64,000 bases of DNA. Origin: Podarcis gaigeae (Eukaryota). Below the pieces are notes generated by a model. That model was not told the origin of the DNA, did not search any database, and saw nothing but the letters and a program-made list of their open reading frames with translations. Numbering within the stretch: position 1 is the stretch's first letter; each line of letters opens with the position of its first letter. Shown here piece after piece: positions 12,691 through 56,835 of the stretch. The stretch lies in assembly GCA_964106915.2 (NCBI GenBank), contig OZ066920.1. One strand, 5' to 3'. The position numbers and the translations under genes were made by a program.

Positions 12691-13172
12691 TATGGGATAC
12701 TGCCAGTGCTATTTTTCTAGAAAAAGAGATGCAGGAACTCACCGTGAACACCTCCTTTGTTCTCTTATAATGGTAATGGGGCCCATTTGAGAGGTGCCAG
12801 AACCAAGTTCCGGTGAGTTCCAGGTGAAAACAAGCTGTGGACACTGCGCTGTCAGAACATCAGACATATGAACAGAGAGTTCTTAATGCTTCATTAAAAA
12901 CAGATCCTCATGGTATAAGTGGTATAAGTTTTCCTCTTATGCTAACTCAGTCAAACAGCCCACTAATCCCCTGTTCCACAGATAAACAGGTGGAAAGGCT
13001 TTACTGAGAACTGAATTGACTCACCCTTTTTAAAAATAATAATAATGTGATAGTTGAATGCTGTATTGTATTCTCAATTGCTTTCAAGTTTTCCTCCTCG
13101 TTGTATTTCTGCATGCATTTGTATTGGTTACACTTACCACTTTTATTGTGTTATATATATATATATATATAT

Positions 13173-13406
13173 GCTTTCGTAGATTTTCACGGGTACAGGA
13201 ATGCAGGTTTTGGTGTCCTCGGGTGTCTTCCCGTGTAAAAGTTGGGGTGTCTAGGCGACGTTTCGACGAGGTCTCACTCGTCATCTGTTCCAGTAACAAG
13301 AAGCCGAAAGCACCAGCCTGAAGATGACGAGTGAGACCTCGTCGAAACGTCGCCTAGACACCCCAACTTTTACACGGGAAGACACCCGAGGACACCAAAA
13401 CCTGCA
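13173..13406 (-). mobile_element. Miniature Penelope-like insertion: 3' tail and pLTR piece plus an inverted pLTR piece
   Basis: 13202-13286 and 13322-13406 are 85-bp inverted repeats; sequence matches the pLTR of the adjacent element; flanked by (TA)n. Confidence 0.9.
13311..13357 (+). ncRNA. Minimal type I hammerhead ribozyme motif (PLE pLTR)
   Basis: CTGAAGA-T-GACGAG(tgagac)CTCGTC-GAAAC-GTC: conserved core, 6-bp stem II, palindromic minimal stem III; stem I short. Confidence 0.8.
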
Positions 13407-13507
13407 TATATATATATATATATATATTTGCTTTCGTAGATTTTCACGGGTACAGGAATGCAGGTTTTGGTGTCCTCGGGTGTCTTCCCGTGTAAAAGTT
13501 GGGGTGT

Positions 13508-13554
13508 CTAGGCGACGTTTCGACGAGGTCTCACTCGTCATCTTCAGGCTGGTG
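13508..13554 (-). ncRNA. Minimal type I hammerhead ribozyme motif (sense to the PLE ORF)
   Basis: Reverse complement of the same core and stem II; overlaps the ORF stop codon. Confidence 0.8.
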
Positions 13555-14500
13555 CTTTCGGCTTCTTGTTACTGGAACAGAGCGGGATCTCAATGTTTGA
13601 GTTCCTATAAATACTGTAGAGGGGGTGTGGTGTCTAGCCTCCAATGTTCTGGGCAGAGAGGAAGTTCCTAGGCTAGTGTGCCTTTTCTTCTTTTGTTCCT
13701 TAATTACTTGAGAGATACCTTGAGTGATTTCTTGAGTGATATCCTGAGTACCACTTAGGTGGGTCATTAGGTGTGGATTAGTTGCTAAAGTCTTTGTGTC
13801 TTGACCTCTTGAACTTTGTGAAGAGTTTTCCTGAGAAGATGGCTGTATTGCACTTAGTTGTGCTTTGGCTTGGCTTCGTGTATAGGGGCGAGCTGTGGTT
13901 TTGTGGCTTGTGTCAGCCAGATCTGTGTAGGGATTGCAGGGGGGTGCAGCATCCGGAGGTGCCACCATGGATTGGCTACTGGATGGTGTCAGTAATTCAT
14001 CTGTGGAGAGGGTCTGGGTTTGGGTCTGGTGTGGTTGATTGGTGTTGGCGTTCTGTGTGCCTCTGGATCTGGTGTCAGTTTTTGTGGGGAGGGCTAATTT
14101 CCAGATGTCTGGCAAGCGGGATGTGTCGTCACGCTTGTTCATGTTGTGAGGGTGTTTCTCTATCTCGATGGCTTCCATGATTATTCTCTTGTGGTGATGT
14201 TCCGTGTTAAAGAGCAATTTGGAATCTGCAAAATTAATTTCGTGTCCTGTTTCTTTCATGTGTTGGAAAAGAGAGGAAGTTTTTTCTTCTTTTTTGACGG
14301 CATTCTTGTGTTCTGCGATACGTGCATTTATTCGTCTGTTTGTTTGTCCAATGTACGTGGCTGGGCAGACTTTGCAGGGTATTTCATAGATCCCTTGGTT
14401 TTCCAACTGGATTTTATCCTTGGGGTTTCTGAGGATATTGGCTATTTTTTGGTTGGTGCAAAAGGCTGTTTTGATATTGTGTTTATGGAGGATTTTGCTA
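13531..14500 (-). CDS. C-terminal part of a PLE ORF: GIY-YIG endonuclease plus low-complexity tail (RT lost by truncation)
   Basis: QGIYEIPCKVCPATYIGQTNRRINARIAEH...HMKETGH...EAIEIEKHPHNMNKRD has the PLE GIY-YIG signature with its Cys/His residues; uninterrupted for about 320 codons. Confidence 0.9.
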
Positions 14501-14724
14501 ATCCACACCTAATGACCCACCTAAGTGGTACTCAGGATATCACTCAAGAAATCACTCAAGGTATCTCTCAAGTAATTAAGGAACAAAAGAAGAAAAGGCA
14601 CACTAGCCTAGGAACTTCCTCTCTGCCCAGAACATTGGAGGCTAGACACCACACCCCCTCTACAGTATTTATAGGAACTCAAACATTGAGATCCCGCTCT
14701 GTTCCAGTAACAAGAAGCCGAAAG

Positions 14725-14771
14725 CACCAGCCTGAAGATGACGAGTGAGACCTCGTCGAAACGTCGCCTAG
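14725..14771 (+). ncRNA. Minimal type I hammerhead ribozyme motif (inverted pLTR)
   Basis: Same sequence as 13311-13357. Confidence 0.8.
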
Positions 14772-14816
14772 ACACCCCAACTTTTACACGGGAAGACACC
14801 CGAGGACACCAAAACC

Positions 14817-14855
<39 letters not shown>

Positions 14856-14894
14856 CAAGCTTTTAGGAGACAGTGGGGTGGGGTATGGTGGGGA

Positions 14895-15350
14895 GTTGTT
14901 GTTCGGATGCCTGAATATCGTCTTCCGAAGCAACTAATCTATTCCCATCTTAAGAATGGAAAGTGAAATACTAATGAGCAACAAAAGAGGCTCTCTAAGC
15001 AAATCTTTTAAAAACTGTAGTACAGTCGTACCTCAGAAGTCAAATGCCTTGCATTTTGAATGTTTTGGCTCCCGAACGCCACAAACCCAGAAGTGAGAGT
15101 TCTGGTATGCAAACGTACTTTGGAACCCGAATGTCCGACACGCATTCTGTGGGTTTCGATTGGCTGCAGGACCTTCCTGCAGCCAACCAGAAGCAAGCCA
15201 TGCCTTGGTTTCCAAATGTTTTGGAAGTCAAACAGATTTCTGGAACAGATTCCATTCGACTTCTGAGGTATGACTGTATAAGCACTGTTAACTGGAAAAC
15301 ACTGGCCAGCGAGCGCTCCAACTGGAGAACAGCCTTTTTACCAAAGGTGT
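14895..15350 (+). mobile_element. RTE-clade LINE fragment interrupted by a MITE
   Basis: RMPEYRLPKQLIYSHLKNGK and NWKTLASERSNWRTAF match the RTE at 58305-59140; the two halves flank the MITE at 15023-15276. Confidence 0.75.
15023..15276. mobile_element. Tigger-like MITE, family B
   Basis: TA-CAGTCGTACCTCAGAAGTC...GACTTCTGAGGTATGACTG-TA. Confidence 0.88.
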
Positions 15351-34001: not shown

Positions 34002-34133
34002 NNNNNNNNNNNNNNNNNNNNNNNNNNNNNNNNNNNNNNNNNNNNNNNNNNNNNNNNNNNNNNNNNNNNNNNNNNNNNNNNNNNNNNNNNNNNNNNNNNN
34101 NNNNNNNNNNNNNNNNNNNNNNNNNNNNNNNNN
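34002..34133. other. Assembly gap (132 N)
   Basis: Run of N. Confidence 1.
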
Positions 34134-54150: not shown

Positions 54151-55111
54151 ATGTAAACAGCTTTAATAATAATATCAGTGGGTATTATAATATATGCTCA
54201 TAGTTTGAGCATATTCACTGTTACCAACCAAGCCTGCATGACCTCCGGATCATATATTACACATATACACACATATCACTGTGGAGTTGATATTTCAAGG
54301 TTTTAGGCTGCTAACTAGAGCATGTCACATGGAAGCAGAGCCATAATTTTATTACTAGGGACAATTAACAAAAACCCACTGAGTCTCAATTTGGATTCAA
54401 AGGTTGAAACACACTTCAAAAGAGAGAAGTATAAGTTTCCTCCATTTCATAGTGCTCAAGAATCTGGAGTCAGTTCTGTATGTCTGGTACAGTGAATCAT
54501 GAATCCCCGAATGTAAGACACAGTCTACCTTTCTGTGCTTGCAAACTGTGTGTCAATCAGAATTTCTTAGTTTCTTATAGCTATGATTGGGGGGTGGGAA
54601 AGGAGGTACCAAATGGCAAGCCTTTGTAGGTCATCCTCAAGACATGCACAGCTCGCATGGGCTACTCTGAAGAGTCCTCAAAATATAACTTTAGAAACTA
54701 ACAAGTTTGCCTAAAGTGAGAACACAGTTCTGAATCTTGTTTACCTGTATGAAAACAACACAGAAGGTGTTCTACACATAGAGAGCAGCAAGATGGAAAA
54801 TGCAATGGGGAGAAAGAAAGAAAGTAAGAAGAACAAATAGCAGACAATGTGTATGTTGTACCAGGGGAAATGAAGTAATGGAGGGATAAAAGAAACATTT
54901 AAATCAGTTTGAATAATCGATTAAAATTAACAGCTAAACATTGGATAGAGCAAAGCTGCAATCATATACATACTTGCATAGAATTCAGGTGACTTCTCAG
55001 TAAACACGCATAGGATTGTGATGGGTGTGGACTGTTTCACCACCGCAGTAGGATAATATAAAGGGGAATGGAAAGCTGGAGATATTAGCTTAAGGTTAAC
55101 ATATATAAACA

Positions 55112-55243
55112 GTTACAGATAGGTAGCCGTGTTGGTCTGCCATAGTCAAAACAAAAAAAATTCCTTCCAGTAGCACCTTAAAGACCAACTAAATTAGTTC
55201 CTGGTATGAGCTTTCATGTGCATGCACACTTCTTCAGATACCA
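55112..55243 (-). mobile_element. Neptune-type PLE terminal fragment
   Basis: Same terminus as 44804-44896, extended through a hammerhead motif. Confidence 0.8.
55202..55243 (-). ncRNA. Minimal type I hammerhead ribozyme motif
   Basis: Minus strand TGGTAT-CTGAAGA-A-GTGTGCATGCACAT-GAAA-GC-TC-ATACCA: perfect 6-bp stem I, core, stem II, palindromic stem III. Confidence 0.85.
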
Positions 55244-56835
55244 AACTTGGATCATTGGCTGAAACTTGGTTGGTAACAGTGAATATGCTCAAATTTGGAT
55301 CATTGGCTGAAACTTGGATCATTGGTTGATGTACCCAAAGTGCTATCTATATTGACTGGTGGCAGCTTTGAAAGCTCTTTCTCAGCCTTGCTGTCTGAAA
55401 TACGGATAACTCTAGAAGCTTGGACTTTCTGAATGGAAAACTTTCACTCAGCTAGTCAGCTACAGCCCCTGAAGAAACGTGTGTGGATGTTTTCGCCCTG
55501 GATTGGTGCAGTGAGGAAAAGAGGAAGTAAAGACAGAATTTTGATAAATGGCAGCATAGAACATGATCATCAAAACAACAAGATTCCAGAAAAGGAATTT
55601 GGTTGAACGGGACTGCACAATGTCTGGCTGAAAGGCATGCTTTTGATACTTAGCCAGGCAAAGGAATGAATGTACACTGATGTGGACCATTTATTCTTAG
55701 AAATATTCATTACTAATTTGAGTAACAATTGCTTGCCAATGGAAAAGTATCTCTGCTGTGTTGTTAATAATATTTAGGGCTACAGTTTCCACTGCTGCCT
55801 GTCAAATATTTTCAAAGGCATCACGTAGGCACAATCCAACACGGACTCAGTCAAGAGGCTTCAGGATAATTATATGTAGGATGCTAAATATGTTCATTAG
55901 GCTTGAACTGAAAGCATATGTGGTACTTTTTGCAAACACTTCTTATGTTTAGGGTTTCAAGACAACAACCCTAAAGAGACAGGCATTCAGAATAAAGACA
56001 GTGTGAGGGGAAATTGTCTTAGGTTGCCCTAAGTGCATCCTGGGATCTTTTTTGGAGGGAGGGGTTGTTTAAATAGCAGGCAATTTTTATTTTTATGTGC
56101 CAATTGGGGAAAGCATTTAGAAACTTGACCCTGTGACCATTCATCCCTCCTGCCAAAGAAATATCAGTCATGTGCCTCCCCTCCTACTGCAAGGTCTTTT
56201 ATTCCGCCTTTCAGGAAACAATAGTATTATGCATTTTCAAACTCCCTGAATACCTAAATGCTAATCGTTCACTGAAGTTTGTACTACTAAAAAGTGTTGT
56301 GAATGTCAGCTTAACTTGATTTCTAACTTAAGCTTCCTATCATGTGTGACTGTTCTACAACCCCCCACATATGGATTACTTCATGGCTTAGGGCTGTAAT
56401 TATCTGCTTGAGCCTCCAGCTGCTTGTCCCACAATCAAGCAAATTAAATCATTACAAATCCAATATACCTTACTATGCTGATCCTACTAAGTTGCTGAGA
56501 ACCTATATAAAGCATTGTGCAATCCTACACAATCTTGTTCTCATCTTAAGTGGTGTCTCTATATTCCCAAATGTTTTACAAAACAATAAAATATTTCTCT
56601 AACAGTAACATTTATTTCAGAGTAATGTTGTTCAAAAGACCAAATAGCCATTATACAAATGTTTGTAGCCATCAAACAAATGGCTTTTTCCATTCTTTTA
56701 ATCAAGCAATGTGCTTCAGAATATAACATCTTCAAAATATATATTTAATATTAAGTAGCACATTTGTAGAATATGGTAAAACTCATGGTGTACAATTGAC
56801 TGAGAAATGCTGCTGAGAAAGTCCAAATGAAATTA

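Follow-up and report, generated by a model that had tools for sequence, protein, structure and literature searches.

How two copies of a Penelope-like element (PLE) came to lie within one (TA)n microsatellite, each with an inverted copy of its pLTR ending at the same base, is the question raised by positions 13152-14851 of the 64-kb stretch of DNA analyzed here (the window). Our results show that the locus is genuine: it is a tidy, very recent case of an element of known type inserting in a known way. We consider it likely that two separate, very recent insertions of one active, Poseidon-type wall-lizard PLE family entered the same pre-existing (TA)n microsatellite. The evidence for this reading comes from the layout of the locus, the two outer ends of the units, their inner junctions, and the corresponding sites in other squamates.

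Layout of the locus

Reading of the window sequence showed three (TA)n tracts bracketing two PLE units of 234 bp and 1391 bp. The features of the locus and its flanks are as follows, in plus-strand coordinates.

12745-13139: single-copy left flank, found on one 633-nt contig of organism B together with the right flank
13152-13172: (TA)n tract 1, 21 nt, T(AT)10; borders the small unit on the left
13173-13406, sense is minus: small unit, 234 bp
13173-13201, minus: small-unit tail, 29 nt, reverse complement on the plus strand; terminates the sense copy on its 3' side, 112 nt into the next ORF
13202-13286, minus: small-unit sense 3' pLTR piece (arm), with its 5' truncation inside the hammerhead core
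13284-13286: small-unit TCT microhomology, at the inner junction
13287-13321: segment between the small-unit arms, 35 nt
13322-13406, plus: small-unit second arm, complementary to 13202-13286
13284-13406, plus: small-unit inverted pLTR copy, ~123 nt; tail-less end ...CCTGCA, 83 nt into the ORF
13318-13348, plus: intact hammerhead-like core in the small-unit inverted copy (motif)
13407-13427: (TA)n tract 2, 21 nt, followed by TT to 13429; spacer between the units
13430-14820, sense is minus: large unit, 1391 bp
13430-13458, minus: large-unit tail, 29 nt, reverse complement on the plus strand; identical to the small-unit tail
13459-13781, minus: large-unit sense pLTR (arm), 323 nt
13517-13547, minus: hammerhead-like core in the large-unit sense pLTR (motif)
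13541, minus: ATG of the next ORF in the large-unit sense pLTR, inside the hammerhead-like core
13782-14497, minus: large-unit middle, 716 nt
13531-14508, minus: C-terminal PLE protein frame, GIY-YIG with CCHH, then a long low-complexity C-terminus; stop inside the hammerhead core
14498-14502: large-unit inversion junction, ATTAG (sense), shared by the sense body and the inverted arm at its inner end
14498-14820, plus: large-unit inverted pLTR copy (arm), 323 nt; tail-less end ...CCTGCA
14732-14762, plus: hammerhead-like core in the large-unit inverted copy (motif)
14821-14851: (TA)n tract 3, 31 nt; right flank of the large unit
14876-15050: single-copy right flank, likewise on the 633-nt organism-B contig

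Within each unit the arms were 100% complementary over 85 nt (small unit) and 323 nt (large unit), or over 86 nt and 324 nt when the ambiguous A/T at the TA border is counted, and the sequence common to both units was 100% identical. Both inverted arms ended in ...AAAACCTGCA, abutted (TA)n, and carried no tail. Two extra bases lie between the tail and the TA run of the large unit (TT on the plus strand, AA on the sense strand), and the small unit has none there. The preliminary description of this locus had given the alternation of TA tracts and units, the shared 29-nt tail, arms of 85 and 323 bp with no mismatches, a common tail-less end base for both inverted copies, and a TCT microhomology in the small unit; the layout and tail were confirmed to the base, and the remaining points were each recovered by our measurements, the TCT lying at the inner junction.

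Across the 64-kb window, (TA) runs of at least six units occurred at tracts 1-3 only, so the association of the units with TA is far beyond chance. Sequence comparison found no further copies of the PLE family in the window besides the two units, and a Penelope junction at 54204-55328 had no sequence in common with the family.

Identity of the element

Both units are 5'-truncated PLEs, each of which joins a tailed sense 3' part to an inverted copy of the 3' end. The large-unit frame aligned to the Pfam GIY-YIG model over residues 39-84 (E = 2.7e-4), with a score of 21.6 bits that just missed the cut-off of 22.6, and the C..C..H..H (CCHH) residues could be read from the sequence of the endonuclease region. 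Related proteins with RVT_1, HTH_animal, and GIY-YIG domains were found in lizards, snakes, and beetles; among these relatives, P0002 carries PF01541, and P0005, P0007, and P0014 carry PF00078 and PF26215. For protein P0006, no contig location was found. Together, the GIY-YIG match, the CCHH residues, and the related PLE proteins bear out the Penelope-like identity that had been assigned to the units from the start. We also considered whether the units could be a DNA transposon that has terminal inverted repeats and targets TA, but a tail on one side only, PLE coding sequence, and a series of 5' truncations ruled this out.

Because of the 5' truncation, the RT part is missing from both units. 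A Logan contig of the same family (L001), which is 99.9% identical over 1045 nt, reaches 366 nt further than the large unit, into the RT-EN linker. P0001 has a single cysteine and no CxxC in the 84 residues upstream of GIY (GIYEIPC), and the lack of a CX2-5CxxC linker upstream of GIY-YIG fits the Penelope/Poseidon clade as opposed to Neptune or Nematis. The protein layout was colinear with that of Poseidon_Ac_1p in a by-eye comparison with the printed PAc protein. Judging from these protein sequences, the family is probably a Poseidon-type PLE, an assignment that we hold as part of the best explanation as a whole. As far as the literature shows, the family has not previously been described in wall lizards, and in this respect it may be modestly new.

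Two fixed outer ends at TA targets

Taking the first base of the ATG as the origin, the units end at +83 without a tail and at +112 with one. The same two ends recurred at loci outside the window. In L001, the sense 3' end is tail-less and stops against (TA)n at the same base as the inverted arms. A family ~80% identical to that of the window was present at two loci in the agamid Phrynocephalus forsythii: in one of them (L002) the inverted arms are ~470 nt long and both carry a tail ending at the homologous base, and in the other (L003) a tail-less sense 3' end stops at the corresponding base. A plain 5'-truncated copy from the snake Ahaetulla prasina (L004) likewise ends without a tail at the homologous base. 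Counting the window and L001-L004, six tail-less and five tailed ends all fell at two homologous positions, and 11 of 11 outer ends in these four squamates abutted TA runs, a tally that is small and comes from loci reached through protein matches. Run X15 added 21 contigs showing the tail-less junction, in which (AT)n immediately precedes 13458. The preference for TA that had been attributed to the family is therefore upheld.

These comparisons show that there are two discrete ends and that either type can occur on either arm. The tail-less end is thus not confined to inverted arms. The preliminary description had read the shared end base as a special start for second-strand or template-switch synthesis. 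In that form the reading is not supported, since an inverted arm of L002 carries the tail and the same base terminates the sense 3' ends of L001, L003, and L004. Indeed, since that base ends sense copies without an inverted arm, it behaves as a reverse-transcription start site on sense RNA. A close parallel is offered by PAc (Poseidon_Ac of Anolis carolinensis), in which the ORF starts at hammerhead stem II in the pLTR and two internal reverse-transcription start sites have been mapped, with the tail at ~nt 85-119 between them (Frangieh et al., 2024; PMC11167929). By analogy, we take the tail-less base of the lizard family to be the proximal of two alternative reverse-transcription start sites. 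That lacertids, agamids, and a colubrid snake all retain this PLE lineage with its two start sites may be modestly new.

Preference for simple AT-rich or (TA)n targets is known among PLEs (PMC8557442, PMC3846280). Naiad and Neptune have a strong (TA)n bias, which hides target-site duplications and has tentatively been credited to the CX2-5CxxC linker upstream of GIY-YIG (PMC8557442). The lizard family resembles Naiad and Neptune in its strong (TA)n bias but differs in that the CxxC linker is absent from P0001; thus, the linker is not needed for TA targeting in this lineage. Strict (TA)n targeting would accordingly appear to exist in a Poseidon-type lineage that has no CxxC linker and is common to lacertids, agamids, and snakes, and this combination may be modestly new.

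Hammerhead-like core and RNA folding

The hammerhead-like core consists of CTGAAGA, T, a 6-bp stem II, and GAAAC-GTC, and is present at the locus in three intact copies and one truncated copy. The ATG of the next ORF lies where hammerhead stem II begins. The core is conserved in the agamid and snake copies, and stem II is paired throughout with one compensatory change, a pattern that is not significant with four distinct sequences. Stem I is just 2 bp long, and stem III requires a partner molecule. The Rfam hammerhead models gave no match at E <= 1 over 2.2 kb or at E <= 10 over 111 nt. Rfam matches to microRNA, snoRNA, and snRNA in the region were judged spurious, those to microRNA being due to the long hairpins. 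The RNA fold around the +83 site was no more stable than shuffled sequences (z = -0.8), and an AC-rich stem-loop like that of PAc is therefore not demonstrated for the lizard family. No element end with an ATG-bearing hammerhead core was found in L005 (Erythrolamprus), and a word search returned no matches to the short ORF beginning in the hammerhead.

Age and abundance of the insertions

In organism B, a close relative, a single 633-nt contig carries both flanks, separated by 63 nt instead of the 1736 bp of the window, and differs from the window at 5 of 570 letters. This contig is the orthologous empty site, and its presence in a close relative indicates that the insertions are recent. After the unique flank letters are subtracted, ~27 nt remain at the empty site by length arithmetic, not from the letters themselves, and these are presumably the TA tract. 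In organism A (Logan contigs from low-coverage short reads), flank contigs stop in the TA runs. In organism-A runs X15 and X1, no alternative letter reached 10% within the element, so the locus carries the majority sequence. Organism D showed its own fixed differences. Summed word depth in the element exceeded that of the unique flank by three to four orders of magnitude, and although this figure is not a copy number, it indicates that the family is very abundant. The complete identity of the two units, the near identity to L001, the majority sequence in the reads, and the empty site in a close relative all support the very recent origin that had been proposed.

Inner junctions and a model for insertion

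The outer ends of the units are fixed while their inner junctions vary, as the preliminary description had stated. At the small-unit inner junction there is a 3-nt microhomology, TCT. At that of the large unit there is a 5-nt microhomology, ATTAG, for which L001 served as reference: it shows the sense body of the large unit running to 14502, so that ATTAG is shared with the inner end of the inverted arm. By our own estimate, random joining is expected to give a microhomology of at least 3 nt ~5% of the time and of at least 5 nt ~0.5% of the time. Contigs from run X15 contained other copies with other inner junctions (13284>14615, 13267>13320, and 13629>14665).

These end products point to priming from both sides of the target, and the purified PAc protein both cleaves and extends the two strands of AT-rich DNA (PMC11167929). 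We suggest that the units arose by target-primed reverse transcription from both sides of a cut target. Each strand of the TA tract would be nicked, and the resulting 3' ends would prime cDNA on the element RNA; priming could take place at either internal start site, i.e., 83 nt into the ORF, giving no tail, or 112 nt into it, giving the 29-nt tail. The two cDNAs would then converge over variable distances and be joined by microhomology, TCT in the small unit and ATTAG in the large. A unit made in this way is predicted to have outer ends that are fixed, an inversion point that varies, and a tail on the side where the distal start site was used. Since both cDNAs begin at 3' start sites, they would overlap and form true inverted repeats, and overlapping cDNAs of this kind imply two RNA templates. 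By analogy, such a two-template scheme would sit well with the predicted PAc dimer.

The twin priming that Ostertag and Kazazian reportedly proposed for L1 in 2001 is similar, in that both strands of a staggered break are said to prime cDNA and the products to be joined by microhomology, giving an inversion. In L1, the second primer anneals inside the same RNA, and the inverted and direct parts are neighboring segments. The PLE scheme is unlike this one, since both of its cDNAs would start at the 3' start sites and overlap to give true inverted repeats.

For the locus as a whole, we favor two events rather than one, with the second insertion entering the TA tract that flanked the first. Such a double landing may reflect a strong preference for TA tracts, or a tail or pLTR already in place may additionally attract the endonuclease. 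A family that numbers thousands of copies, in a genome with few TA tracts, can be expected to hit some of them twice; the D. virilis enzyme is reported to recognize a resident tail, and, by analogy, such recognition would make double hits more frequent still. At 21 nt each, tracts 1 and 2 are equal in length and may thus be the two copies of a 21-nt target-site duplication, which would arise if the tract next to the first unit was duplicated in full by the second insertion; we therefore infer a target duplication of ~21 bp. The layout is repeated in the agamid, where L003 reads in order as a large unit, (TA)71, a 104-bp fold-back unit, and (TA)54, i.e., the same tandem arrangement in one TA tract, with TA tracts of 101, 142, and 108 nt. 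Logan contigs from other parts of the genome contained further tandem units with short TA runs between them (14173>13458 and 14274>13458).

A more specific form of the model can be put forward only tentatively, and we regard it as rather doubtful. A symmetric, probably dimeric PLE particle might nick both strands of (TA)n about two helical turns (~21 bp) apart and extend two convergent cDNAs on two RNA templates, with arrays and longer TA microsatellites as the result and with no need for a CxxC linker. If this were true, the squamate-wide lineage, through TA-tract duplication together with attraction by resident copies, would build multi-unit arrays and would make TA microsatellites more numerous and longer, with the long tracts of L003 as examples.

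Alternative explanations

Both units might have been laid down, together with the middle TA run, in a single compound insertion that used several RNA templates with template jumps. Their same orientation, zero divergence, and common absence from organism B agree with such an event; complex tandem and inverted PLE insertions are known (PMC8557442), and L003 has the same composite layout. Nevertheless, a template jump has no TA template to copy, and the middle tract is a full 21-nt TA run of the length of tract 1, as predicted by a second insertion with target duplication. Each unit, moreover, is a complete two-ended product with its own microhomology junction, and the abundance of the family relative to TA tracts leads one to expect double hits in any case. 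We therefore consider a single compound event unlikely. Formally, the small unit also equals the large unit minus 1154 bp (13544-14697), and it could be a deletion derivative if unequal exchange involving TA tracts had doubled the large unit and a TA flank in tandem and 13544-14697 had then been lost via TCT, a route with which the equal length of tracts 1 and 2 is compatible. This route would require two rare rearrangements and the loss of TT beside one tail, all without any substitution, and the fact that only the large-unit tail has an adjoining TT argues against it. As the contigs show, the genome abounds in other small fold-back units with many different junctions, and one occurs in L003; hence, independent retrotransposition is the simpler explanation, and a deletion derivative is very improbable.

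The inverted arms themselves could have another origin under the self-priming or antisense-template model of Arkhipova et al. (2013), which was proposed for head-to-head pLTRs with junction palindromes (PMC3846280) and in which the cDNA folds back or switches and the arm end corresponds to the 5' end of an antisense RNA. One X15 contig (joint 13241>13368) is indeed a perfect palindrome. At the locus, however, neither junction is palindromic, since the inverted arm is shorter than the sense part and the sequences that meet at each junction are non-complementary, and the same end base is found in plain sense copies that have no inverted arm (L001, L003, and L004). There seems little chance, therefore, that this model accounts for the units. 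Finally, mis-assembly of a very high-copy repeat could have placed the small unit beside the large one: the abundance of the family is extreme, assemblers are known to have trouble with the inverted and tandem structures of PLEs (PMC8557442), and no organism-A contig spans the locus (Logan short-read contigs). Yet the small unit has a unique inversion junction and copies no part of the large unit's layout, the entire 1.7-kb structure is well inside one long read, the organism-A flank contigs enter the TA tracts as the assembly predicts, and the same layout is present in an independent genome (L003), making an artefact extremely unlikely. Two separate insertions into one (TA)n microsatellite thus remain our preferred reading.

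Relation to described elements

The inverted 5' copy, the one-sided tail, the AT/TA preference, and the origin of the tail from two start sites are already known (PMC8557442, PMC3846280, PMC11167929). PLEs have been described as showing 5' truncation, an inverted 5'-truncated copy, and a one-sided tail of 30-40 bp, and as causing assembly trouble (PMC8557442, PMC3846280). The present units share with those insertions the 5' truncation, the adjacent inverted 5'-truncated copy, the optional 30-40 bp tail, and the junction microhomology, and differ from them in nothing essential; the perfect identity of the arms and the two units per tract make this an unusually clean example. Similarities to PAc extend to the ORF start at stem II in the pLTR, AT-rich targets, GIY-YIG with CCHH and no upstream CxxC linker, two ends ~30 nt apart with the tail between them (near +85 and +119 in PAc, +83 and +112 in the lizard family), and very homogeneous, young copies. 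Nevertheless, the two are different families whose pLTR and ORF-start sequences cannot be aligned by eye. The reported target of PAc is ATT-containing AT-rich DNA, whereas the lizard family is strictly confined to (TA)n microsatellites, and the lizard ORF, in contrast to that of PAc, runs through the whole pLTR to a stop inside the hammerhead core.

The locus reveals no new kind of element and no new mechanism. Its value is as a clean in vivo footprint in which two discrete reverse-transcription start sites, the use of both DNA strands, and joining by microhomology can be read, as in the integration model that in vitro work on the Anolis PLE yielded in 2024. For annotation, it accounts for many of the short hairpins with hammerhead motifs in lizard genomes as ordinary PLE by-products. 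In keeping with a wall-lizard source, family sequence has also entered a gene model of Podarcis muralis, which contains an exonised pLTR 92% identical to the family.

Reading frame, pLTR and hammerhead core

In the window, the reading frame of the Penelope-like element (PLE) remains open across the entire pLTR and ends at a TGA within the hammerhead core, where this stop codon and the ATG that opens the following ORF share bases (ATGACGAGTGA). The sites in the window are:

13531-13547, minus strand: part of the hammerhead core in which the PLE frame ends
13318-13348, plus strand: further hammerhead-core site
14732-14762, plus strand: further hammerhead-core site

The agamid protein P0002 retains some of the long C-terminal extension of the PLE protein.

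Fold-back units and other inversions

At the related locus of the agamid Phrynocephalus forsythii (L003), the sense half of the 104-bp fold-back unit (L003:5706-5809) starts GCCAAAAC, precisely at the point where hammerhead cleavage is predicted (GTC|G). This start is possibly the footprint of a ribozyme-cleaved RNA template, although it is a single case (n=1) that chance could explain. The TA tracts flanking the PLE units at this locus are very long:

L003:3718-3818: TA tract, 101 nt
L003:5564-5705: TA tract, 142 nt
L003:5810-5917: TA tract, 108 nt

One of the three continues into (GA)n. Such long tracts could either be hot targets or have been extended by repeated insertions.

A different kind of 5' inversion was found in the same-family contig L001, the 5' end of which (L001:1-38) opens with 30 nt of RT-coding sequence in inverted orientation, the source of which lies just upstream in full-length relatives, an arrangement resembling classic twin priming or snap-back. 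In one contig of short-read run X15, window position 13241 is joined to 13368, forming a perfect palindrome with no spacer, and some copies of the family may thus be exact fold-backs.

Related proteins and surroundings

PLE-derived protein segments occur in four squamate gene models, probably as a result of chimeric annotation or of exonised insertions:

P0006: Podarcis muralis, TSNAX
P0007: Ahaetulla prasina, P2RY1
P0012: Pseudonaja textilis, ACOT12
P0021: Erythrolamprus reginae, olfactory receptor

The position of the segment was read in P0006 only, where it forms the C-terminus. Beetle proteins (P0009 and P0015-P0019; Leptinotarsa, Pyrocoelia, and Harmonia) share 48-61% identity with the lizard endonuclease region, on par with some squamate families, a closeness for which either horizontal transfer or a slow rate of evolution could account.

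Other very high-copy repeats border the single-copy flanks, at window 12700-12786 and 15049-15300. Inverted ends of 26 nt (15021-15046 and 15253-15278) mark the right-hand repeat, of which each of the four runs contains many variant copies. Elsewhere in the window, positions 34002-34133 are a run of 132 N.
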